This document shows positions 7,078-49,639 of a stretch of DNA of 64,000 nt, piece after piece (positions within the stretch are counted from its first letter, which is position 1; every line of letters begins with the position of its first letter). The translations under genes were made by a program, and so were the position numbers. The notes beneath the pieces are model-generated. The model was not told the origin of the DNA. It made no database searches and saw nothing but the letters and a program-made list of their open reading frames with translations. This DNA is from Malacoraja senta (Eukaryota), in the NCBI GenBank assembly GCA_038087875.1, contig CM075979.1:17236001-17300000 (forward strand), written 5' to 3'.

Positions 7078-10000
7078 TTAAGAATTATTGGAATTATTTT
7101 TATTTATTGAATTATCTTGGCTGATTACTTCATTGTGCACTTCCATGAACCTCTGTAAATATTTTGAAGTATACAACCAGTGGTGCTTCAGTATATCTTC
7201 CAGCTCATAGCTCTTGGACTGCCTTGCATTCATTTTTCTGAAACGGCGAAAGAGTTTGTTGCCCGATTCATTGCCTTCACTTGCCCATGCACCTATTGAG
7301 CCATCTCTTTCAATGATCTCCGGGACATGAGCCAAAGTCTTATGAAGGTAGTTGGTGATCTTCCCATCATATCTGTACTTGAACTTTGTATGAAGCAGTT
7401 CTGCAAATCTCTGGGAATTAAAGCTGTACTGACAAACAAGATCTGGACATTCTTTGAGTGGGAATGTAGATCGCCACACGGGTTTCATGAGAACGTAAAG
7501 GTGCATCAGTTCCCTGAGAATCTCTCGTCTTTCTTCAGAAGGCACCAATTCACACACTGCTTCCACAGTCTCTTCAGTCATTAGTTTCCTTGCAAAGTTT
7601 CCATTCAGCCTCATGATAGGTTTCAGGTTTATTTTGTCCCTGAAATGTTTATCAAGCATTGCCTGCCACCTTTTCCTTTCCTCCTTAGATGGACTAGGAT
7701 TTTTGTGCAACTCCCCAATCTCATCCTGGAATATCTTGTAGAATTCTGTTGCATTGCCAATATCACAGTGCAGAGCATCTATGGAGGGCTGTGTTTCAAT
7801 AAATGCTTTTGCTGCAACCCCCTTCACCCTGTCACGTAACTCTTCAGCTGTCTCCTGATATGGATTTGTGCGCCAAACTTCATAGCGCTCTAAGTTCTCT
7901 TCATGGCTTCTTGTTATGGAATGAAGGGTCAGATTTTGTGAAGCGTTGCTTCGAGTGGCATCACAGAGCGTACACACATACATCGAGCCTGATGCTTCAA
8001 GGCCTTCTAACTCACGGACCAGCTTTTCATCATAACCCGTGCCTCGAAAGATAAACTTAAAGGATCTGGGCAAATCTCCAATTTCAAGGATTAAGTCACT
8101 GCTTTTCATTGCTTCTCTTTCGGCGACTAGGGGACCCAGGATTGCCGTCACGGTTTCGTGGTCAGATTCATCGGCCAGCATCAGGCAAAGTGGCTTGCAG
8201 CACAACTCAGAATTTGGCTTTAGCTCTTCAAAGACGCTCACTTTCTCACCATTTTCATTCTCCACGCTTATAGTCATGATTGTGAAGGAATACCTCACTG
8301 CCTTCTCTGGAACTGGAGGACCACATCCATGTTTTTCACTAACATCGCCCATTCCATCGCAAGATTCTTTGATTACTACTGTAAATGGTCCACCCAAATA
8401 CTCATCAATATTTTGGCATTTTAAACCTTCCAAAATATTATCCTCAAGATCTTTCAGTGTTGATACAATTGCCACATCGTACCTAAATCGTCTTGAAATT
8501 GTTTCCATTGGATATTCGTCAACACAGTGTGACCAACCACAAGTACCATCTATTATCCCTACTTCAGTGTTGGTAGAGACTTGTGGTAGAGGAGGTTCCC
8601 ATTCAAATGAATAATAACCCGGCAACAAGGTTTTCTCTGCACTTCGGAGTGCATGCAGCGGTTGGAAGATTTGCTTCCCGGTTGTTGCTTTGACGGTTTT
8701 ATACATTTTATGATACTGACTGCAACTTAGAAAGGTACTAACCCTAATGGCAAGACAGACTGCTGGCTTCAGCCCTGATCCATGTCCTTGCATCAGAGCC
8801 TCCAGTTCATCTGCTTGCCTGTGCTCGTTACCAGCTCTCAATGCCAGCAAGAACAGAGTAAGGCACACTGACTTCACATCACCTCCTTCCTCCTTGTCTG
8901 CAAATGCCTTCACCTGAAGTTTGAGATATCGCAGCCGATGTTTTTGGGCCCGGCGAGTTAGAGAGAGTAAGTGTAGCCTCGGCCGGCCACCCTTGTTTAT
9001 TGGTGAGTAGGCGTGCAGCATTCTTTTCTCTTTGTGATTCTTGGCATGGTTGGGATATTCGCCAAGTCTCACCTCCTCTCCACAATCTGCCACTGGACAT
9101 TTTAAAACCAATGAATTGAGAACACTTACAAATGATTTTACTGGGCTTCTACACTCTGTGGGATCGCAAGGAAACCTGCAAACGGGACAATATTTTCCTA
9201 GCACTGCAGTGCATTTGAGAATGCATGTTCTGCAGAAAAGATGCTTGCATGGTGATTGCACTGGGTCAGCCAGTAAATGCTCACAGACCTGGCACGACAC
9301 TGACTGAATAAAGTTATTGGGATAATCGAGCATAAGGAGTTTTGTATTTAGGTGGATCTTCTTGCAGTTAACAATCTTTTTGGCCAATAGAATACTTGTT
9401 GAATTTCTTTGATCTTTTCTTTTAGTAATTCTTGATATATCGACTGCCGTTTTGGGCTTCTTTGCAGCTGGTGGACTTCGTTTGAGAACTTTCCGTTTGC
9501 GAGTCCCATTTCTTAAGTTGCAAACATTGCAAAAATTGGAGTGTGGCTTCCACTGAACAATTGTGCTGATGGGAAAAAATGCATCTTCGTTAGTTGTGTT
9601 GTTGATTGTCTGAATAACAATCCGCCAGCAATTGTAGCAAAAGTGGGTGGGATGTCTGGCCTCTGAGTCCATCCGCACATCGATATTAAATGTGTTGTGG
9701 ATGAGCTCTGGCCAAAAACTATTTCCATATCCCATTTTCCTAAGAACCTCTTGTGTGACATCATCAACAGGGCCATTGACTGGGTATTTCATGTCATAGC
9801 TGTTGGTATTAAAGGAAACTCCACAAATGCGGCAGAGATTTTGTAATCTTAACACGTGATCTTCCAAAGATTTTGTTTCCAATTGCCTTTCATAGAACTT
9901 GGCCTTTGGCGGGATGACCTCTAAAGGCATGTGTTTCAGAGTCTTCTTGTCCAAGGGCAATGTCTCCAAACATGTAGTTCCCGGTGGCTTGATTTGAGGA

Positions 10001-10161
10001 GGTGACATTTGCCACATTAGACCATGAACTGGCTGAACAGTTTGTGGCTCAAAAACCTTTGCCGCTGAAATCTTGGCTTTCTTTTGGACGTTTATTGTTG
10101 GCCTGGTTTCTGAATTCCTGAAATATTCAGGTATTATTTGCATCGGCATCTCCATTTCCAT
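7078..10161 (-). CDS. RAG1: V(D)J recombinase subunit RAG1, intact single coding exon, 1027 aa
   Basis: RING finger ([24 protein letters not shown]...CPVC), nonamer-binding [20 protein letters not shown], and the catalytic DDE triad in [15 protein letters not shown] and [17 protein letters not shown] and PIMRLNGNF are conserved. A TAG acceptor ends at 10175, 13 nt upstream of the ATG. Confidence 0.99.
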
Positions 10162-10914
10162 CAGAAAGTGATATCTAATAGAGACATAAGAGTGATTTTG
10201 ATTAAAATAGGATCACTATTCGTGCCTTTTATTTAAGTTAATCTCTTTTGCACTTAATTTTAATTTATAAAACTTACATTCTCACTGCAAAGCGAACATT
10301 GTGCTTTTAATTCCAAGAGGCATAAAATTAATCAAGTCTAATTCATGAGAAAGTTAAAAGTAACTTAATCTACTTGGCACTCTGCCAGAATGTGAAACAG
10401 CCTCTTCCACACAGTCTCCCATCAGCGGATTCATGTAAAGTTGCCTCTGATGTCTTTTAATGACCAGGAAAGAACTGAAAATGTTATGCATGTGTTCAAA
10501 AATAAGAGAAGGATGAACCTAGCCATTTGTCAACCTCAGTGATGGGAGAGATTAGCATGGGATGTGAGATGTGAGATGGGGGTGGGATTCAATGCAGGAC
10601 TGAGGCTGGTGAGAGGCTGGTAGTCAGTATGGAAGGTGATGAAGAAAGTTCAGTGGACAGAATAGACAGCTGCATGACTAGGAGTGAGGATGGACTGTTG
10701 GATTGAATTGCATATATTTTAATCTGAGAGGCCTGACAGGTAAGGAGGGTGAAGTCAGGGTGTGGATAGGTACGTTTGACTGGGACGGTGGAGGAATTAT
10801 GGAACCCTAGCTAAGGGAAAGACTGCACCGGCAGCTTAATTTTCTAGGGCACAGGTGATAAAGGAGAGATAGAGGTGGGGATAAAAGAGCAGGGGGTGTT
10901 GCTTTATTGTTTAG

Positions 10915-19670: not shown

Positions 19671-20465
19671 CTGAAAAACAAAATAAAATGAAGTGATCTG
19701 TCAACAATTATTTCCCTCTGTAAAATGTGACAATCAGGTATTATTGGCAATAATAAACTACCAGTATTCAGGATTGGTCCATGAGTGATTCTATAATTGC
19801 AAAAGATTTGCAGCATGCTATCTCTTAACATATATAAACCGGATTTCCATAACCTTTCTTGCACTGTTACTTTCATTTATGCTCTGGAACTTGCACCTTC
19901 CCAATAGAACAAACCTTTAGCCTCTGCCCATCACTAACTCATAGAGTCATTGAGTCTTACAGTGTGGAAACAGGCCCTTTAGCCCAACTAACCCACACTG
20001 GCCAACATGTCCCATCTACACTAGTCCCATCTGCCTGCATTTGGCTCATGTCCTTCTAAACTTCTCCTATCCATGAACCTGTCTAAATGTTTCTTAAGCA
20101 TTCCAATAGTACCTGCCTCATTGACCTCCACCGGCAGCTCATTCCATACACCCACCATTCTTTGGGTGAAAATGTTACTCCTCGGGTTCCTATTAAATCT
20201 TCCTCCCGTCACCTTAAACCTATGTCCTCTGGTTTTCAATACTACCCTAGATATTTCAGATATTTCTCCCAGCAGTGATGAAGGAGCGACAATGTATTTC
20301 TATGTCAGGTTTGTTTGTATCTTGGAAGGAAACCAGCTGTTGAACCCTCTAGTGCCCTTGTCCATTGGTGGAAGAGACCCAGATTGGGGTGATCCAGACT
20401 AGTAACTGCAGTGCATTTTGTAAACATCTCATACTGCAGCCACAGTATTGTAGAGATTTAATGGT

Positions 20466-20754: not shown

Positions 20755-20993
20755 AAACATACTTCATTTAACATACTTAATTTCAGATGTTAATACAATT
20801 ACAGTTTTTTCTGGGATATGTTTCTTGTAATGTAAACTGAACAGTGCCTTGAAAAATCCTTCCCTATTATAACTAGATTGTACATAATTAAAAGTGCCTA
20901 ATTGTGAAATAAAAATAATTCCAATTTACCAAATCACATTTTTGTTTGGAAGTTCAGCCTGATACACAGATTGTAAAAGTTGCACAATGTTAC

Positions 20994-21189
20994 CTCAATG
21001 CTCTGCTTAGTTTCTCGTAGGTCATGTGCTCATTATTTTTCCTTTGTCCCCAGAGCTTAGCCAGAGAATCGGACTTCACAACTTTGAATATTCCTTCTCC
21101 TCTGTCTTCCCATTCCAAAATGCCGCTGTTTTTCTCAGGAGAGTGGAGAAGATTGCGAATAAATTCCCAAAGGTACTCTCTTTGCAAAC
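20994..21189 (-). CDS. ELF5: ELF5 ETS-domain exon, 196 nt ([14 protein letters not shown]...[11 protein letters not shown])
   Basis: Acceptor TTTTGCTTTCTCCTGAAG| and donor TGAG|GTAACA. It carries the ETS motifs [24 protein letters not shown] and [11 protein letters not shown]. Confidence 0.95.
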
Positions 21190-22010
21190 CTTCAGGAGAA
21201 AGCAAAAATCTCACTTACTCATATATCTGAAGAAGGGTCTCAACCCGAAACGTAACCCATTCCTTCGCTCCAGAGATGCTGCCGGACCTGCTGAGTTACA
21301 CCAGTATTTTGTGTCAACCTCATATATCTTATGTTCTGCATGTTACAAAAAAAAAATCTTCCCACTCCAGTTACCTCCCACACTCTAAAGTCGTATGGGT
21401 TTGGAAGTTAATTGGCTTTGGTAAAATTGTAAATTATCTGTAGTGTGTGTAGAATAGTGCTAGTGTCCGGGGATCGCTGGTCGGCGCGGACTCAGTGGCC
21501 GAAAAGGGCCTGATTCCACTGGATCTCTCAACTAAACTGAAGATTAATTGGCCAAATAATACTAATTGAGAGCCACCGCCTACAGCACCGCTCCTGGAGC
21601 CCCCTCCTCCACACACAGTGTACTGGGCTCCATCAGCATGATCTAGGCAGCAGCATGGCCTCCAGTGCTGCACTTAGGGAACCATATTAATGTATTGCCT
21701 TATATGGCAATATATGTGCAGCCATATTAACGTATTCCCATGCACATCATTGTGATACGGGGGGAAACCAGAGCATCCAGTTGAAACCCACAAGCTGAAC
21801 ATGCAAAGTCCACACAGACAGCAGCAGAGTCGGGACTGAACTTGATTGCTGGATCTGTGAAGGAGAAGCTCGACTAGCTACCTCCCTAAGAATTTGAAAC
21901 TGAGCATCAGCTTGGCACACTACATGGAAGTTTCCTGCGAAGAAGTTACCCAGCCTGCATTCAACATCTCCAGTGTCGAGGAGGCCATATTGTGTGCATC
22001 TGGGAACGTT

Positions 22011-30344: not shown

Positions 30345-31358
30345 ACTAGACCAAGTAGGACCCATTGGGTCCCGTTCCCCCAACGCAATATTCTACCACT
30401 CACCTGTCCCCCCAACGCAATATTCTAGCACTCACCCGTTCCCCCAACGCAACCTGTTCCCCCAACGCAATATTCCAACTCTCACTCATAGCCCCCAACT
30501 GCGCAGTGGCGGCTCATTTCCCCTCATCCCCCAGACTTTCTTCCCCTTCCTCTTCACCCTCCTTCTTCTTTCCCCTCTCCTCCTCCCCTACCCCTCCCTC
30601 CCTCACTTCTCCCTCCCTCTCTTTTCCCCTACCCGCAGTCACTCCCTCCCTCCCTCCATAACCCCTCTTCTCTCCCTATCCCCTCTCCCTACCCCCCTCC
30701 TCTCCCTCTATCTGCAACCGCGGGAGGGGGGAGGGAGAGGGAGAGGCCTCACTTAGGGCCCTGGGCTGTGGTTGTAGCCAGTGCGATGTCTGGAGGCTGC
30801 TGCTCCGGGCTCGTGGGGAGGCCTCTTCCTCTCCCTCCCTCCCTCCAGACCGCAGCGTCAAAAAGTGACTGACTTTCTGTTATTTTAAAATGCCGCAAGC
30901 GCAGGAAGACTTTCAGTTATCCATGCGTGCGGATTTTAAAATAACTGAAAGTCAGTCCGTCAATTCTTTATGCTGCGGTCTGGAACCGAGGGAGGGGGAG
31001 GGGAGGAGTGCGGCTCGGGGCCCAGTCCATGTCTGTGTCCGTGTCTGTGTCCAGCATGCTTTTATCGGGGACAGCGCGTTTATGTAAATGAGATCCCATT
31101 GTGACGTCATACGCTGCTAACGGCAAGTGGTGGCATGTTTTACATTTTTTTAAGTTAAAAATGTGAATAACTTGTAAAATATAACATCAATGTGAAGAAA
31201 ACTTGATACACCACACCACAGGACAATGGTGAGTAAGGTGGTCCAAATTTTTAAGCTATCGTGTACCGTTTTGGCGTAATTCAGGACATCACAGACACAT
31301 AAACACACAGACAGACAGAGATAGAAACAAACACGATGAGTTTTAGTAATATATAGAT
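30345..31358 (+). mobile_element. Non-autonomous Helitron-like element
   Basis: 5' ACTAGACCAAGT followed by the hairpin GGACCC-ATT-GGGTCC, subterminal (ACAG)n, and 3' GATGAGTTTTAGTAATATATAGAT. It is related to the element at 16949-17997. Confidence 0.55.
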
Positions 31359-32948: not shown

Positions 32949-33384
32949 ATGGGTATAGATCAGGTAGATGCACAGAGTCTCTTGCCCAGAGTAGGAGAAT
33001 CCAGAACTGGAAGTCATAGGTTTAAGGTGAAGCGGGAAAGATTGAATAAGAATCTGAGGGGTAACTTTTTCACACAAAGGGTAGTTGGTGTAAAGAACGA
33101 GCTGCCAGAGGAGGTAGTTAAGGTAGGGACTAGTGCAACGTTTAAGAAACAATTAGACAGGTACATGCTTAGTACAGGTTTGCAGGGATAAGGGCCATGC
33201 GCAGGCAAGTGTAGGGCTGCCAACTCTCACGCATTGAGCGTGAGACTCACGCATTTTGCCCAATTCTCACGCTCTCACACTGATCACAAATTTCTCACGC
33301 TCTGTTGTGAGAAATTCTGTGATCAACGAGAATTTCAAAACTAATATGGGCCGCGGGTGTTCGAGAGCTGGGGTGGAGGGAGGG

Positions 33385-33661
33385 ATGGAAGCAGAAGCAG
33401 CGGCGGGGACAGATGCGGATGAGGAGCAAGGGATGGCGAGTGTTTGCCGGGCTGGCGAGTGTTTGCCGGGCTGGCGAGTCGCTCGCTGCAGCTCTGGCCA
33501 TGGAGCAGCCTCAGTGCAAGAGTCCTGGGCCGTCGGAGGCGTCGGAAGCGTTGCGCCGCTGCCATGAGAGTCTCTGTGCCGAATTCGCCCTGGTGACCAG
33601 CATGGATCAGGCTGCGGCTCGGTGCATCCTGGAGGACAACCAGTGGCTGCTGGAAGTAGGT
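33385..33661 (+). pseudogene. TDP2: Captured TDP2 (TTRAP) exon 1 (UBA-like domain) with its splice donor, frameshifted by a 19-bp tandem duplication
   Basis: RRCHESLCAEFALVTSMDQAAARCILEDNQWLLE aligns by eye with human TDP2 RRLLCVEFASVASCDAAVAQCFLAENDWEME and is followed by GAA|GTAGGT. Removing one GGCGAGTGTTTGCCGGGCT unit (33435-33453 / 33454-33472) gives an open 84-codon frame from the ATG at 33385. Confidence 0.8.
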
Positions 33662-33739
33662 ACCAAGCACTGGGTAGAAGCGGTGGAAGATAGTGGCCTT
33701 CAAATGGGGGTGGTTGGAGAAAGCATCCTGCTTGCCTGC

Positions 33740-34105
33740 TAGATTTTCACTTACTGCAACTGCAGGAAAAATGTTCCCGATATTGGGGGAGTTCAGAACC
33801 AGGGGTCACAGTTTAAGAATAAAGGGTAGGCCAGTGAGGACTGAGATGAGGACCAACTTTCTTCACCCAGAAAGTTGTGAATCTGTGGAATTCTCTGCCC
33901 CAGAAAGCAGTGGAGACCAATTCACTGGATGTTTTCAAGAGAGAGTTACATTTAGCTCTTGGGGCTAGCAAAATCAAGGGATATGGGGAAAAAACAGGAA
34001 AGAGGTACTGATTTTAGATGAACAACCATGATCATATTGAATGGCAGTGCTGGCTCGAAGGGCCGAATGGCCTATTCCTGCACCTATTTTCTATGTTTCT
34101 ATGCT
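33740..34105 (+). mobile_element. CR1 3' fragment inside the hAT-like element
   Basis: GKMFPILGEFRTRGHSLRIKG...; typical CR1 tail ending in TTTCTATG. Confidence 0.85.
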
Positions 34106-35574
34106 TGAGTATATGGCAATAAAACTCGACCACTTGATTTCGAAGCATTCATGCAAGGTGGAGGTATAATGTAGTCACAGAGTGATACAGTGTGAAAACA
34201 GGCCCTTCGGCGCAACTTGCCCACACCCGCCAACATGTCCCAGCTACACTACCTGCTTTTGGTCCATTTCCCTCCAAACCTGTCCTATCCATGTATCAGT
34301 CTAACTGTTTCTTAAATGTTGGGATAGTCCCTGCCTCATCTACCTCCTCTGGCAGCTTGTTCCATACACCCACCACCCTTTGTGTGGAAAAGGTTACCCC
34401 TTAAAAAGTTACCTCTTTAAAATACTTTAAACAAAAAACATTGAAATCATACTTCTACAATGCACTAAAACATGATTTTAATACATAAAATCTTAAAAAG
34501 TTCCTACCGTGGGAGGAGGGACACCAGGTTGCTCCACTCCCTCAACTATTATATTTGTTTACCTCACTGACTATTTCTTAACCATCCCCCCCCCCCAAAT
34601 TCCTTTGACAGGTTGAATAGAAATGTCCCCGATCTCGTTTTATTAATTGAACACGTAGACGAACATCCTCAAGGAGTGTAATCAGATGGAAACTGATTCA
34701 GATGCGATGTTTAAGAGCTTGTTCAAAGGAGTGGCATATTTTAAAGGAGTGACAGAGATACTTGCAGGGGAATGTGTGAGGAGGTTATTATTTGTCTTTA
34801 GTTTTAACTTGAACCAGGACATCTGAAGATTCTAAGTTTAATATAGTAATTGTGCTGATACTGACTCCAACCAACCATGTAATGAATATCATCCATTCCG
34901 GAGGTTTTATTTTTCTGATGCCATTTAAACTTCACTTGGATTTCAGTCACTTCAATGTAAAAGTAATTGGGAATGGGGAGCATTGGAACAAAAATTTGTC
35001 CTCGCTACATATTAACTGTAATATAATAATGTATGCATGTTGGTAGATGCAAACGAAACAACGATCTTTTTTTAAATCATTTTTGTGGTATGAATACCAC
35101 AGAAAATATTATGTATTCTCAAGATCACATTTAATAAAATAATATTGCTTAAATATATAGTTATTGGACTTTACATTTCGGAAAAGTCCCAGCTGAGAGG
35201 AAGACAGCAAAATACTGAAAATATTGGGGGTGAAAATGACTTCAGGACAGTTTGTTAGGAAAATGAAGGAAATGGTAACAGAATACATACAGCTGAGTGA
35301 ATTTAATTTTATGGATGAGAAATTGTGTTCAACCAATTGATGACTTCTTTGACAAAGTAACTAGCATGTTAGATAACAAGGAAGCCAATGGATGTAGCAA
35401 ATTTTGTTATACAAAATTTGGTCCGTGAAGTGCCCCATAAAAGATTACCGCATTAGATAAGCACCTGTGGACTTGAACGTAATAGGTTAAGTCCAGGGGG
35501 TCAGATATGGGGCTTTATGTGTGGGCCAGATATATTGTCAGTGCAGAGGGGCTAGGAGCAAGGCCAAGTGTGCA

Positions 35575-38437
35575 TCCAGACTCAAGATGGCGCCTGCCAG
35601 CGGCGACTTTTTGCTAACCGCCAAACAGAAGAAGATTACTTACAGCAACAAGCAACTTACCTGGATCGGAAAAACGGCAGAAATCGGCGCCATAACGTAC
35701 AAGCTGCTAGTGCATCTGAAAGCACTAGCAATTTTGCGATCTCCCGCAGCTGCGGGAGCCACCGACTGCAAGCGTTCCCTGGACCGCTGGAGAGAACCTG
35801 ACCCGATTAGGAATCAAAGAGACTGTACCTGGAAACACCTCCAGAGCCGACGAGCAGGATTTCCCGGGAGCAACAGAGCTGGAGCTGCCGTCTGGGAGGG
35901 AATCGCTGGTCCAGCACAAGTTCGCAGAAACAGCAGGTACAGTAAGTACAGTACCTGGAAACAAAGGGGGAGCCTCCATTGTGTCTGGAAACGTGGCCAA
36001 CGGGCAGGACTTCAGGTCAGACTGAAACGCAGGGGATTTCGGTCCCCTCTCCCTACTATCCTACTGGCCAACGTACAGTCCCTTGAAAATAAAGTGGAGG
36101 ACATAAGGGCAAGATTGCTTTATCAAAAGGAGCTGAGGGAATGCTCTGTGTTCTGTTTCACAGAGACATGGCTCACCCCCAGCTCCCCAGACTCAGCGGT
36201 CCAGCTTGAAGAGTTCTCCATCCACCTTATGGACCTTATGCAGACATCTGTGAAAGGGAGAGGAGGGGGCGTCTGCCTCATGGTCAACTCTGCGTGGTGC
36301 TAAGACGTGGCAGTTCTGTCCAACTCCTGCTCTCCACACCTCGAACATCTGGCGGTGAAGTGCCGTCCCTTCTACCTTCCGAGCGAATTCACCTCCATCA
36401 TCCTGACCGCGGTCTACATCCCACCCCAGGCAGACGTCCGTCTGGCACTGGAGGAGCTGCACGCTGTGGTCAACAAACACCAGACATCTTACCCCGAGGC
36501 GTTTACCAACAAAGCTGGGGACTTCAATAAAGCAAACCTTACGAAATCGCTCCCTAACTTCCACAAACATGTCTCCTGCTGCACCAGAGGACCAAACACC
36601 CTCGACCACTGTGACACCACCATCAAGAATGCCTATCGCTCTATTCCTCGCCTTCACTTCGGTAAATCCGACCATACCGCGGTGCTGCTTCTTCCTGCCT
36701 ACAAGCAGCAATTAAAGAGCGCACCTCCAAAGGTGAGGACTGTACAGAGCTGGGAGGGGGGGGAGGGGGGGGGCACAGAGGAACAACTCCAGGACTGTTT
36801 GGAGTCTGTAGAATGGGCAATGTTCAGGGACTCGGCAACGGACCTGAACGAATACGCCAGTCGTTAGACTTCATAAAGAAATGTGTGGAGGACTGCATCC
36901 CTACAAAAACCTTCCGAGTGTTTCCCAATCAGATGCCTTGGATGAACTTTGAGATCCGCACTCTCCTGAAGACCAGACACCGGGCATTCATGTCTGATGA
37001 TACAGTGGTCTACAAGAAGTCCAGATACGACCTTGGTAAGGCCATCAAAAAGGCCAGAAGGGACTTCTGCTCCAAGCTGGAGAATGAGACAGATGTTCGG
37101 CAGAGCAGCGGGGCCTGAATGCAATCACCTCCTACAAGGCGAAATCAGGAGGTAGCTCGAATGTTGGCGTAGCATCACTCCCTGACGAGCTCAATGCGTT
37201 ATGCGATCTTGCTGGCTCTCCACTCTGCTCTGGACCATTTGGACAACAAAAACTCATGTCAGGCTGTTATTCATTGTGTACAGCTTGGCATTTAATACAA
37301 TCATCCCCTCCAAGCTGGTTACCAAACTCACAGAACTGGGTCCCTGCGCATCTCTCTGCAATTGTATCCTCGACTTCCTCATTCACAGACCACAGACTGT
37401 TCGAATTGGTGTTAAGGTGTCAGCCTCGATATCAATCAGCACGGGAGCACCTCAAGGCTGCGTGCTCAGCCCCCTGCTGTACTCACTCTATACTCATGAC
37501 TGCGTAGCTGGTCATAGTGCGAACTCCATCATCAAGTTCGCTGACGACACCACTGTTGTGGGACGTATCACTGATCGGGACGAGTCAGAGTATAGAAGAG
37601 AGATCGACTGACTGACCAAATGGTGCCAACACAATAACCTGGCCCTCAACACCAGCAAAACCAAGGAACTGATTGTGGACTTTGGAAGATGTAGGATGGC
37701 GACCCACAGTCCCGTTTATATCAATGGGTCGATGGTGGAAAGGGTCAAGAGCTTCAAATTCCTGGGCGTGCACATCTCTGAAGATCTCTCCTGGTCCGAG
37801 AACACTGATGCAATCATGAAGAAAGTACATCAGTGCCTCTACTTCCTGAGAAGATTACGGAGAGTCGGTATGTCAAGGAGGACTCTCTCTAATTTCTACA
37901 GGTGCACAGTAGAGAGCATGCTGACCGGTTGCATTGTGGCTTGGTTCGACAACTTGAGCGCCCAGGAACGGAAAAGACTACAAAAAGTAGTAAACACTAC
38001 TCAGTCCATCATCAGCTCTGACCTTCCTACCATCGAGGGGATCTATCGCAGTCGCTGCCTCAAAAAGGGTGGCAGCATCATCAAGGACCCACACCATCCT
38101 GGCCACACACTCATCTCCCCGCTACCTTCAGGTAGAAGGTACAGGAGCCTGAAGACTGCAACGTCCAGGTTCAGAAACAGCTTCTTCCTCACAGCCATCA
38201 GGCTACTGAACTCAACTCAAACAAAACTATGAACATTAGTAGCCCATTATCTTTTTATTTGCACTTTATCTGTTTTATTTATTCATGTGTGTATATATTT
38301 ATACAATGGTATATGGACACACTGATCTGTTCTGTATTCATGCCTTCTATATTTTGTTGTGCTGAAGCAAAGCAAGAATTTCATTGTCCTATCTGGGACA
38401 CATGACAATAAACTCTCTTGAATCTTGAATCTTGAAT
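35575..38437 (+). mobile_element. Rex/Babar LINE with APE and RT, internally deleted near 37200, degraded
   Basis: LPTILLANVQSLENKV...FCFTETWL (APE); GDFN; SDH; [20 protein letters not shown] and KFADDTT (RT); (AATCTTG)n tail at ~38415-38436. Confidence 0.88.
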
Positions 38438-40841
38438 AGGTGTGCAGTCAAAGCTGGGACAATGGGAGTGTTCAGCACTGGGAACCTAAGCAGGTAAGCA
38501 GCTATGATCATGGTAGAATAGGGGGCGAGGTGTAAGGCTGGACTTAGGGTCAGGAATGAGAGAAGGTATGCAACTGGAGTCAGGGTCAGGAGTAGCACCA
38601 GGTGTGCAGTGAGACCCAGGTTGGTGAACATGGGCCAAGTGCTTGATTATAATCTGGTTTCCATACATGAATACACTAAGATCATTCATGTGCTGCACCT
38701 GTTGATCGGAACCTGGCTCTACTGTGGAATGTAATTAGGAATATAATTTAGCCTGACCTTATTCATAGCTAATCCAATTTAAAGCATAAATATTGCATTC
38801 AAGTGTAAGTTAAAAAGACTCACGACAGTATGCACCAAATTGCACAATTTCAAGCTGAAAAATGCAAAAGTTCGGTACCAATGGGAGGGGGCCACACCTT
38901 CCTCCCCCCCCCCCCACCTCGGTTGCTACGCTCCCTCGGGCTTGGTCTCCTGCAATTTCTTACTCCTAACTCTCACCCAATGTTGGCAGCCCTGCAAGTG
39001 GGACTAGTGTAGATGGGATATGTTGGTCAGTGTGGGCAAGTTGGGCCAAAGAGCCTTTTTTCATGTTGTATGACTCTATGACTACGTTCCAAATAGCTGG
39101 GTACAACACAAGAGCACACATAAGAAAAAAAGACCAAGAGAAGGCCTCCTGGGTTATCAAACCTGTCGCATCATTCACTGAGGTAAAAGTTCATCTGCAC
39201 CATGCCTCAACTCCTCCTCAATGCCTGCTCCACATAGTTCACAATCTTTCAAAAACAGTTATATCTGCTCTGTAAATACCTCCAGGGGTCTCCACAGTTC
39301 ACTGGTGTAGCAAATTCCAATGATTCACCACCTACTGTCGGACAAAATTACTACACAGCTCAGTTTTCAATGACTGCCCTCTTATATTGTAACTATTTCC
39401 CTCATTCAAGACTCCCTTAAAGGATCTTGTGCTTCAATAAGATGCCCCCCTTGTTCTTCCAATCTCCAAGGAATACAGCGTCACAGGCGGGACAGCGATA
39501 GAGCTGCTGCCTACAGCGCCAGAGACCCCGGTTCGATCCTGGCAACGGGTGATATCTGTATGGAATTTGTACATTTTCCCTATGACTGTGTGGGTTTTCT
39601 CCAGTTGCTCTGGTTTCCTCCCACACTTCAAAGACGGTAGGTTTGTAGGTTAATTACCACTCTTCCCGGCCCCACAGCAGAAGCGTCCACGTCGCAGGGC
39701 TGGAAACTGGAAGTATCCTGAGCTAATTCTGCTACCACCATCATCTACTGCGACAAGTGATGGCTTCCAATGATTGTCGCCGGAACCTTGCGTCCTTTTC
39801 AGGACGGACGATGACAGCGAGGCCAACATTTGTAACAAGATGGACATGAAAAGAAGACCACTCTTCCCAAAGCTGTGATCTTTTCAACAACAATATAATT
39901 AGTCTAGGTGACTCAATCCTGTTTATTCCCGGAACCGTCAGTGCACATTTGTTGCCAATGACAGCTGGACCTACTGTCACTGCCAGCTCTCCAGCTGTTC
40001 ATCTAATCCAGTACTTGGAGGGTCCCTCCTGAATAGGTGTGTTGCACCACCAAGGTCCAACTCAGTGAAATGTAGTACATGCTATCCAAGTCTGTGGCCT
40101 GCTCCATCATGGACTAGCTCACATTGGTGTCCATTCTCATATGTAGGGTGATGTCCTCAATTGACAAACTGCTTTTACATGAATCATCATCATTGCTTTC
40201 TTCATTTGTTCCCAACTCTTCATCCTTTAATTCCACCATAAACGTACAAACCGAGATGGTTCATACCATAAATTTTCCTTTCTGATTCTAAGGTATATCA
40301 AACCATTAGCCCATTTGAAGAATTGTACCTTTGAAGGATGTTCCCTTTCCTTCGGTAACTGTAACATCAAGCCCTCTGTATTACAGGAATCTCCAAAAGC
40401 AGCTCTGGTGAAGCCTCTTGCTTTTCCAAACGTCCTGTAGACATCCTAACGTTAGCATGTGACCTGTTTTTTCCCCCCACTGAACCAGCTTTCAGAGTTC
40501 AATGAAGATCACACTGCTTTTACTTCAGAAGGGAAATTGGTTCATGTGCCATTTGCAACCTGAACGCTTACTCAGCCATTAGGTTCCCCCATTTTAAACC
40601 ACCATGCATCAATTCTCCCATCCTCTTTAGGCAATGTTTGACCAAAATATCCTGTTAAGGTCTACACTATGTCCTCAGTATATTTTAGCAATAACTTATA
40701 GTGCCAGTGGTCTATATATATCCCACCCCACCTTGAGCAACCATATCTCTTTTCTCTTCTCAATTATCACCATATTATCACCATCACTCTTCTGTGTCCT
40801 CTCCCAAGACCTTAATGATATTTTACACCTTAAGGAACAAT

Positions 40842-48660: not shown

Positions 48661-49420
48661 ATTCCCCAGAAATTCACAAGTATTTAAAACATCCAAAAGT
48701 ACTACAAATTAAATCAGGCTATTAAAGATTTCATAAACTAAAAATAAAAAAGTTTGAAATGTTTAAAATAATTAAATAAATTTAAATATATAAAATTATC
48801 AATTAAGTACTTTCAATTAATTCAAAAAGTTGTAAGTATTTCTGGAACTTGCCTATCTCCCTTAAAGCTGCTCCGCTCAATGCAAGTGAATGGAGTCACT
48901 GGATCTGCACAGGGTCCAGCCTAACACAGGTTTATCAGATGGGTTTAAGCGTGACTGCTTGATGGGGATTTCAAAGTCAGAGTACAATCAGAATGACAGC
49001 AAGGATCTCCTAAATAGTTCAGGACTTTCATGTTCCCACGAGACATCCTCGGATGTACTTTAGATTGTCAGTCCAGCCCTCCCCACAAGATCGCCGTACT
49101 TAGCTTCCTTATAGTGATCAGCTTCAGAAACTAGAGTTAATCTCTGGCCTGACATAACAGGCATCATGAAGGCCAATTGTAATGCTCCATCATCACTGGG
49201 ACCATAACCCAACTAATAAAGTGTAAACCAAGTCTGAGCCTGTGACATTCTGGCCTGCATCTTACAGTATCACACCAGAGATTTACTTTCAGAACAGGAA
49301 GGAACTGCAGATGCTGGTTTAAACCGAAGATAGACACAAAATGCTGGAGAAACTCAGCGGGATGGACAGTGTCTCTGGACAGAAGGAATGGATGACGTTT
49401 CAGGTCGAGACCCTTATTCA

Positions 49421-49570
49421 GATATATGAGTAAGTGAGAATCGTATTTTGCTTTCTCCTGAAGGTTTGCAAAGATAGTACCTTTGGGAATTTATTCATGA
49501 TCTTCTCCACTCCCCTGAGAAAAACAGCGGCATTTTGGAATGGGAAGACAGAGGAGAAGGAATCTTCGAA
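49421..49570 (+). pseudogene. ELF5: Inverted partial duplicate of the ELF5 ETS exon and its 3' splice site
   Basis: 49464-49570 matches the minus strand of 21189-21083 with about 7 substitutions, including GAG>TAG at 49475-49477. It retains GATATATGAGTAAGTGAGA...TTTTGCTTTCTCCTGAAG and the adjoining Penelope-derived repeat. Confidence 0.93.
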
Positions 49571-49639
49571 TCTATTTTTCCAGATTTCCTATACACTTAA
49601 ATAATTTCTGTACAAGGCCAGCCTGGCAATTGTCTAAGC

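Follow-up and report, generated by a model that had tools for sequence, protein, structure and literature searches.

The 64,000-nucleotide stretch of the Malacoraja senta genome analyzed here (GenBank assembly GCA_038087875.1, contig CM075979.1; hereafter the window) carries, as identified with Pfam, RAG1 at 7084-10212 and an ELF5-like gene with an Ets-domain exon at 20993-21214, both on the minus strand. The Ets exon is preceded, 12 kb upstream and on the opposite strand, by a 5.8-kb interval (33212-38994) with short terminal inverted repeats (TIRs) that contains a CpG-rich block with a TDP2-like coding exon (Table 1). Our data make it quite probable that this interval is a copy of a nonautonomous TIR transposon, presumably of the hAT superfamily, that carries the captured 5' end of a TDP2-like gene and was mobilized in trans. 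The antisense orientation relative to the ELF5-like gene agrees with a preliminary description of this DNA.

Table 1. Features of the TDP2-like-cargo element and its flanks (window positions; SINE and LINE, short and long interspersed nuclear element; ORF, open reading frame; UTR, untranslated region)
Feature	Position	Strand	Basis or remark
Left half of split SINE-like repeat	33060-33205	+	82% to 34252-34398 (-), 75% to 20032-20178 (-)
Target-site duplication CAAGTG, left copy	33206-33211		Sequence reading
Left TIR TAGGGCTGCCAAC	33212-33224	+	Inverted match to 38982-38994 except first base
Left subterminal region: four direct CTCACGC, one inverted copy, two hairpins	33225-33345	+	Likely transposase-binding region; present in L001 and L002
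GC-rich cargo leader, 5'UTR-like or upstream in-frame ORF in other copies	33346-33499	+	Part of GC 0.65 block
19-bp tandem duplication, frame-shifting, private to window copy	33430-33467 (33430-33448/33449-33467)	+	Repeat search
TDP2-like first coding exon, 52 codons, first two helices of N-terminal UBA	33500-33655	+	PDB, Foldseek, Pfam
Splice donor GTAGGT and intron-like cargo sequence	33656-33770	+	90-97% identity across all four copies
SINE already in master copy (cargo part or early insertion)	33771-34107	+	Same position in L001 and L003
Second SINE-like repeat, probably later nested insertion	34168-34398	-	82% to split flanking repeat
AT-rich internal DNA, family backbone or nested insert	34399-35567		GC 0.36; no ORF >75 amino acids
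Nested frame-broken LINE, (TGAATCT)n tail, GTGTGCA-flanked	35575-38437	+	RVT_1 and ALKBH8_N in separate broken ORFs
Right internal region, degenerate ~36-bp G-rich repeats	38438-38981		Repeat search; no Pfam family
Right TIR, minus-strand reading CAGGGCTGCCAAC	38982-38994	-	Same sequence as left end of L002
Target-site duplication CAAGTG, right copy	38995-39000		Sequence reading and uninterrupted SINE copies
Right half of split SINE-like repeat	39001-39100	+	85% to 19945-20029 (-), 82% to 34168-34251 (-)

The interval is a single insertion and not a pair of independent ends, because it splits a SINE-like repeat and is framed by a perfect 6-bp target-site duplication (TSD). The sequences just outside the ends, 33060-33211 on the left and 38995-39100 on the right, together make up one such repeat, of which contiguous copies lie in the window at 19945-20178 and 34168-34398 (both on the minus strand), and the empty site could be reconstructed from these uninterrupted copies as GCAGG-CAAGTG-GGACTAG (GCAGGCAAGTGGGACTAG). 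A search of the window sequence revealed AGGGCTGCCAAC as an exact inverted pair of 12 nt at 33213-33224 (plus strand) and 38982-38993 (minus strand); with the terminal base included, the ends read TAGGGCTGCCAAC on the left and CAGGGCTGCCAAC on the right, corresponding to a 13-nt inverted-end pattern of YAGGGCTGCCAAC. Taken alone, such a pair is weak evidence, as chance would yield about 0.3 13-mer inverted pairs within 6 kb. The two ends might then match by accident or come from two different elements, making the 5.8-kb interval a mosaic, and an interior consisting mostly of nested repeats as well as a right subterminal region devoid of the CTCACGC array seen on the left would agree with this. 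However, the flanks form one SINE when joined and bear an exact 6-bp duplication where they meet the element, and the right end matches the left end of a second copy (contig L002, described below) base for base, which renders a fortuitous pairing or a mosaic extremely improbable. The preliminary description had placed one TIR-bounded element at 33212-38993; the unit and the common origin of its ends stand, but its right boundary is at 38994.

Further copies were found outside the window. With the exon as query, a collection of 1.84 billion representative proteins gave one true relative, P0001 (110 amino acids, 84% identical), and a second search gave P0003 and P0004; these three entries derive from the contigs L001 (ENA, 4.6 kb), L002 (Logan, 1.2 kb), and L003 (ENA, ERZ15185604, 702 nt). 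The alignments of L001 and L002 to the window both begin at the first base of the inverted end (CAGAGCTGCCAAC and CAGGGCTGCCAAC, respectively), and their left flanks are unrelated; therefore, the element has transposed together with its cargo more than once and is multicopy, with at least three TIR-bearing copies (window, L001, and L002). The donor and the intron-like stretch are shared by all four copies, and the ORFs of L001, L002, and L003 start with MEAEA..., continue through MEQPQ..., and terminate at one common read-through stop. In L003, homology starts at window position 33349, i.e., at the start of the GC-rich block; its first 74 nt are unrelated, and it contains the TDP2-like block, the donor, the intron-like part, and the SINE without a transposon end, with the exon changes Q37*, R41W, and C42F. 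L003 might represent a locus of the donor lineage, another vehicle, or a copy that was truncated. Within the window, blastn revealed no second copy of the left, middle, or right unique parts of the element. Protein searches with the right-end ORF and the right-internal ORF gave no match, and neither did scans of JGI metagenomes with a protein pattern and with a 32-nt invariant stretch. The entries P0001, P0003, and P0004 are read-through ORFs of 70 to 112 amino acids that are listed among the predicted proteins of metagenome and Logan collections; they are host-DNA contamination giving spurious UBA_4 proteins.

The short TIRs of hAT transposons begin with YARNG. The termini found here fit this pattern, with TAGGG and CAGGG at the two ends of the window copy, CAGAG in L001, and CAGGG in L002. 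A TSD of 8 bp, the length expected for hAT elements, was considered and rejected: the terminal YAG (CTG) bases are conserved in L001 and L002 and hence belong to the element, which leaves a duplication of 6 bp that fits only the hAT6 subgroup. Closer inspection of the left subterminal region revealed that all four CTCACGC motifs of the 64-kb window are located there, at 33226, 33246, 33266, and 33294 with a spacing of 20 to 28 bp (33226-33300). Furthermore, the left arm (134 nt) is predicted to fold as DNA into two hairpins (−28.7 kcal/mol, z = −6.1), and such a combination of repeats and hairpins is typical of subterminal DNA bound by a transposase. Families of hAT elements that make TSDs of 6 bp, termed hAT6, have been described (Kapitonov and Jurka 2007, as cited in PMC12730594), and our element resembles them in its TSD and its YARNG-fitting termini but lacks the transposase by which membership in hAT6 is defined. 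Considering the YARNG termini, the subterminal repeats, and the existence of the hAT6 subgroup, we assign the element to hAT of the 6-bp-TSD type, a probable but unproven placement that retains the hAT-like label of the preliminary description, although not the 8-bp TSD expected there. The element is nonautonomous, because the sole Pfam families inside it are the reverse transcriptase-type domains of a LINE.

The cargo begins directly behind the left arm. The block at 33346-33655 (310 bp) has a GC content of 0.65 and 24 CpG dinucleotides, with an observed/expected CpG ratio of 0.78 compared to 0.44 for the whole window. The cargo ORF, MEQPQ...QWLLE, starts at the ATG at 33500 and ends at the junction GAA/GTAGGT (33655/33656); in L002 and L003, the donor is GTAAGT. 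In a search of the PDB, the 52-amino-acid exon matched the UBA domain of human TDP2 (6q00_B) with an E value of 1.6e-4 as a single sequence and of 7.3e-5 as a four-copy profile, and worm TDP2 was found at rank 2 (single sequence) or rank 3 (profile). Human and worm TDP2 were the sole matches with an E value of <1 over the UBA segment, and no other UBA protein appeared at an E value of <10. In Pfam, the exon matched UBA_4 with an E value of 7e-4, just below the gathering score. Consistent with this, comparison of an AlphaFold2 model of the exon (predicted local distance difference test score of 79, and >89 over the helices) to the Swiss-Prot models with Foldseek placed TDP2 at all of the ranks 1 to 8 (cow, human, rat, chicken, two frogs, zebrafish, and worm), always at the N terminus and with 30 to 44% identity, with UBALD1/2 and p47 ranking lower. 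Because the TDP2 ranking is consistent, although each match is weak, TDP2-like is the right name for the exon, as judged by its sequence and predicted structure.

Like the UBA domain of TDP2 (PDB 6q00), the exon has the first two helices, with 13-14 of 30 residues aligned, at the N terminus of the protein. The alignment ends at the residue equivalent to human ...WEME, and the frame then enters nonhomologous sequence; since the exon stops at the donor, it has no third helix, and reading through past 33655 does not supply one. Unlike TDP2, the cargo consists of the first exon only, the whole EEP catalytic domain is missing, and the window copy is frame-shifted. A simple six-frame motif scan of the window revealed no motifs of the TDP2 catalytic (EEP) exons, a weak test, and the downstream ORFs gave no match to the EEP (Exo_endo_phos) Pfam domain. 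The endonuclease region of the LINE farther downstream was considered as the missing EEP exons and rejected; it has no match in Pfam or the PDB and is located directly upstream of the reverse transcriptase ORFs, although with broken frames. The cargo, as read from these comparisons, is a TDP2-like fragment and not a gene.

Since the GT donor at the end of the ORF is followed by shared noncoding sequence and a SINE, the succession of exon, donor, and intron-like stretch points to genomic DNA as the source of the cargo. The SINE at 33771-34107 is 93 to 96% identical to its counterpart in L001 and L003 compared to 77 to 80% for the other SINE copies of the window. The four copies do not differ over about 41 nt of the intron-like part, within 33716-33760 (GGAGAAAGCATCC...CACTTACTG); because non-CpG divergence is low, such invariance is not significant according to a rough estimate. 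The 19-bp tandem duplication of the window copy is absent from L001, L002, and L003, whose ORFs are uninterrupted there, and the frames of the ATGs at 33346 and 33500 differ by one base, as the duplication predicts; in P0001, P0003, and P0004, an ORF starting with MEAEA... continues through the leader into MEQPQ. The preliminary description had recognized the GC- and CpG-rich block inside the left TIR, the TDP2-like UBA segment ending at a GT donor, with TDP2 as its expected best protein match, capture from genomic DNA and not mRNA, and the frame-breaking duplication, all of which our data bear out. The further TDP2 exons that would mark a real gene nearby did not appear in the weak motif scan or the Pfam search. 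The second in-frame ATG that it had noted does lead into the UBA segment but is at 33500 and not at ~33501.

Could the UBA exon be the transposon family's own gene, so that an autonomous relative with a TDP2-UBA-like first exon exists and the window copy is an internally deleted derivative? All recovered copies with a left end also carry the exon, a cargo-free backbone was not seen, and the exon is located directly behind the subterminal region, where the promoter and first exon of a transposon would be expected. On the other hand, the similarity is specific to the N termini of TDP2 across animals, the exon evolves neutrally among the copies (see below), the next sequence is a SINE-containing intron-like stretch with no further coding exons, and L003 has the block without the transposon end. 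We therefore regard an origin within the transposon family as unlikely and favor capture from a host gene.

A comparison of the four copies to their consensus revealed 22 nonsynonymous and 6 synonymous changes, corresponding to a ratio of nonsynonymous to synonymous substitution rates (dN/dS) of ~1.05, and conservation of the exon does not exceed that of the intron-like part; selection on the exon was therefore rejected. Divergence from the consensus is 0.141 per site at CpG positions and 0.024 per site at non-CpG positions, a roughly sixfold difference made up mostly of C>T and G>A changes, which indicates germline methylation. The idea that the GC-rich block is kept unmethylated as a CpG island was rejected for the same sixfold faster decay, and the high CpG content thus reflects the youth of the copies (~1 to 3% non-CpG divergence from the consensus) and not protection. 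The neutral dN/dS, the CpG decay, the frameshift in the window copy, and the stop in L003 make the cargo look like a dead, neutrally evolving, and methylated passenger that most likely does nothing now.

Alternatively, the block might serve a host transcript as its functional first exon or promoter, either as a real gene start or as an antisense promoter co-opted within the ELF5-like/RAG1 region. Its CpG island-like composition, the good context of its ATG, the intactness of its GT donor, and a frame that is open from 33500 onward would fit such a role. However, it lies inside a TSD-flanked insertion that splits a SINE, the same block occurs at other loci, the six-frame scan of the window gave no TDP2 catalytic-exon motifs (with the limits stated above), the upstream frame is broken by the 19-bp duplication, and the CpG decay points to germline methylation. 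A present role in a host transcript is thus very improbable, and we retain the view of the cargo as a passenger.

With regard to the neighborhood, a segment at 49333-49570 on the plus strand repeats the Ets-exon region (21083-21315) in antisense orientation with 87% identity and has an open frame at 49478-49597. Furthermore, the region at 30450-30900 is a low-complexity block of the GGGAGGGA type (GC content of 0.61, strongly strand-skewed) that adjoins a palindromic unit at 30880-31000. The GC-rich patch at 30.4 to 30.9 kb was considered as a promoter of the ELF5-like gene and rejected, being purine-rich low-complexity DNA that resembles a repeat.

The left arm, cargo, and SINE account for ~0.9 kb of the element and the right part for ~0.55 kb; much of the DNA in between (34168-38437) has probably been nested later. 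The AT-rich segment at 34399-35567 matched no Pfam family at an E value of ≤0.01 and no repeat elsewhere in the window. The LINE matched RVT_1 (E = 3e-10) and, in its C-terminal ORF, ALKBH8_N (E = 6e-10), and its insertion is marked by the GTGTGCA duplication at 35568-35574 and 38440-38446. The ALKBH8_N domain model evidently also captures LINE tails. ORFs elsewhere in the element, outside the LINE, gave no Pfam family at an E value of ≤0.01.

How could the element have arisen? In our model, a master copy took up genomic DNA from a TDP2-like gene, comprising the CpG-rich leader, the first coding exon, the donor, and the start of intron 1, with a SINE acquired along with it or beside it; gap repair or template switching after excision may have been the mechanism of capture. 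A transposase encoded elsewhere would recognize the YAGGGCTGCCAAC ends and the CTCACGC subterminal repeats, and the chimeric element would then have spread to many loci. The window copy would have inserted, in antisense orientation, into a SINE upstream of the ELF5-like Ets exons, duplicating 6 bp, and would subsequently have gained the 19-bp tandem duplication, the LINE, and probably other nested repeats.

Several points weigh against this model. The individual TDP2 matches are weak, with 30 aligned residues, Foldseek E values of ≥0.2, and a UBA_4 score below the gathering threshold. Neither the parental TDP2 locus nor a cargo-free element was retrieved, and therefore, both the act and the direction of capture are inferred. 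A full-length skate TDP2 was also not found: the search of 1.84 billion proteins gave an element copy and one low-complexity false match, but ordinary TDP2s would score too low in it, and the absence carries no information. L003, with its cargo but no TIR region, is not explained by a simple one-vehicle story. The right end is documented in the window only; L001, L002, and L003 stop inside the SINE. Finally, neither the window nor the retrieved contigs revealed a transposase with these ends, and IS3EU and Dada elements likewise produce TSDs of ~6 bp, which makes the superfamily uncertain.

Gene-fragment capture of this type is an already known kind of event. We classify the element as a Pack-TIR as defined by Tan et al. 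(2021, Nat Commun 12:4280; PMC8277862): it has TIRs and a TSD, an interior derived from a host gene without a transposase, and copies at different loci. That survey reported 370 Pack-TIRs in 100 animal genomes, 208 of them hAT (PMC8277862), and the statement in the preliminary description that such captures are rarely reported in vertebrates therefore does not hold. Like the animal Pack-hATs, our element is a nonautonomous TIR element that encloses several hundred bases of genic host DNA, an exon plus neighboring intron sequence, with hAT as the commonest vehicle in the survey, and like the frog Pack-TIR hAT-N8_XT, which bears the 5'UTR of CAPSL, it carries the 5' end of a gene (PMC8277862). 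In contrast to the elements of the survey, for which an identified parental copy was required (PMC8277862), the parent of the skate element was not found. Multicopy elements were rare there (4 of 370, the example given having three copies; PMC8277862), whereas the skate family has at least three TIR-bearing copies. There is also a likeness to the plant Pack-MULE and Pack-TYPE elements, in which GC-rich 5' ends of genes are transduplicated and the chimeric element is then amplified (PMC5861414, PMC8903248). Pack-MULEs, however, are Mutator elements of plants with 9-bp TSDs and long TIRs, whereas the skate element has a vertebrate host and shows no evidence of expression or selection.

It is imaginable that the family acts as a dispersed cassette of promoter, first exon, and donor, some copies of which give a TDP2-UBA leader to chimeric transcripts of neighboring genes. 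If so, this would be true exon shuffling, here with a plus-strand antisense transcript across the ELF5-like/RAG1 neighborhood, and in its amplification the family would far exceed every other Pack-TIR known from vertebrates. We consider such activity decidedly unlikely, and the exon-shuffling vehicle of the preliminary description is not supported, given the dN/dS of ~1.05, the methylation-type CpG decay, and the frameshifts or stops in the copies. For genome annotation, the copies yield spurious "TDP2-like" first exons with ORFs of ~110 amino acids, three of which are already public as predicted proteins. The element adds a well-delimited, multicopy capture of a gene fragment by a DNA transposon in a cartilaginous fish. 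Because multicopy Pack-TIRs are very rare in animals (Tan et al. 2021, PMC8277862), the dispersal to many loci of an exon that is CpG-rich, lies near a promoter, and retains an intact splice donor offers a useful natural test of the rate at which such cassettes are exapted.

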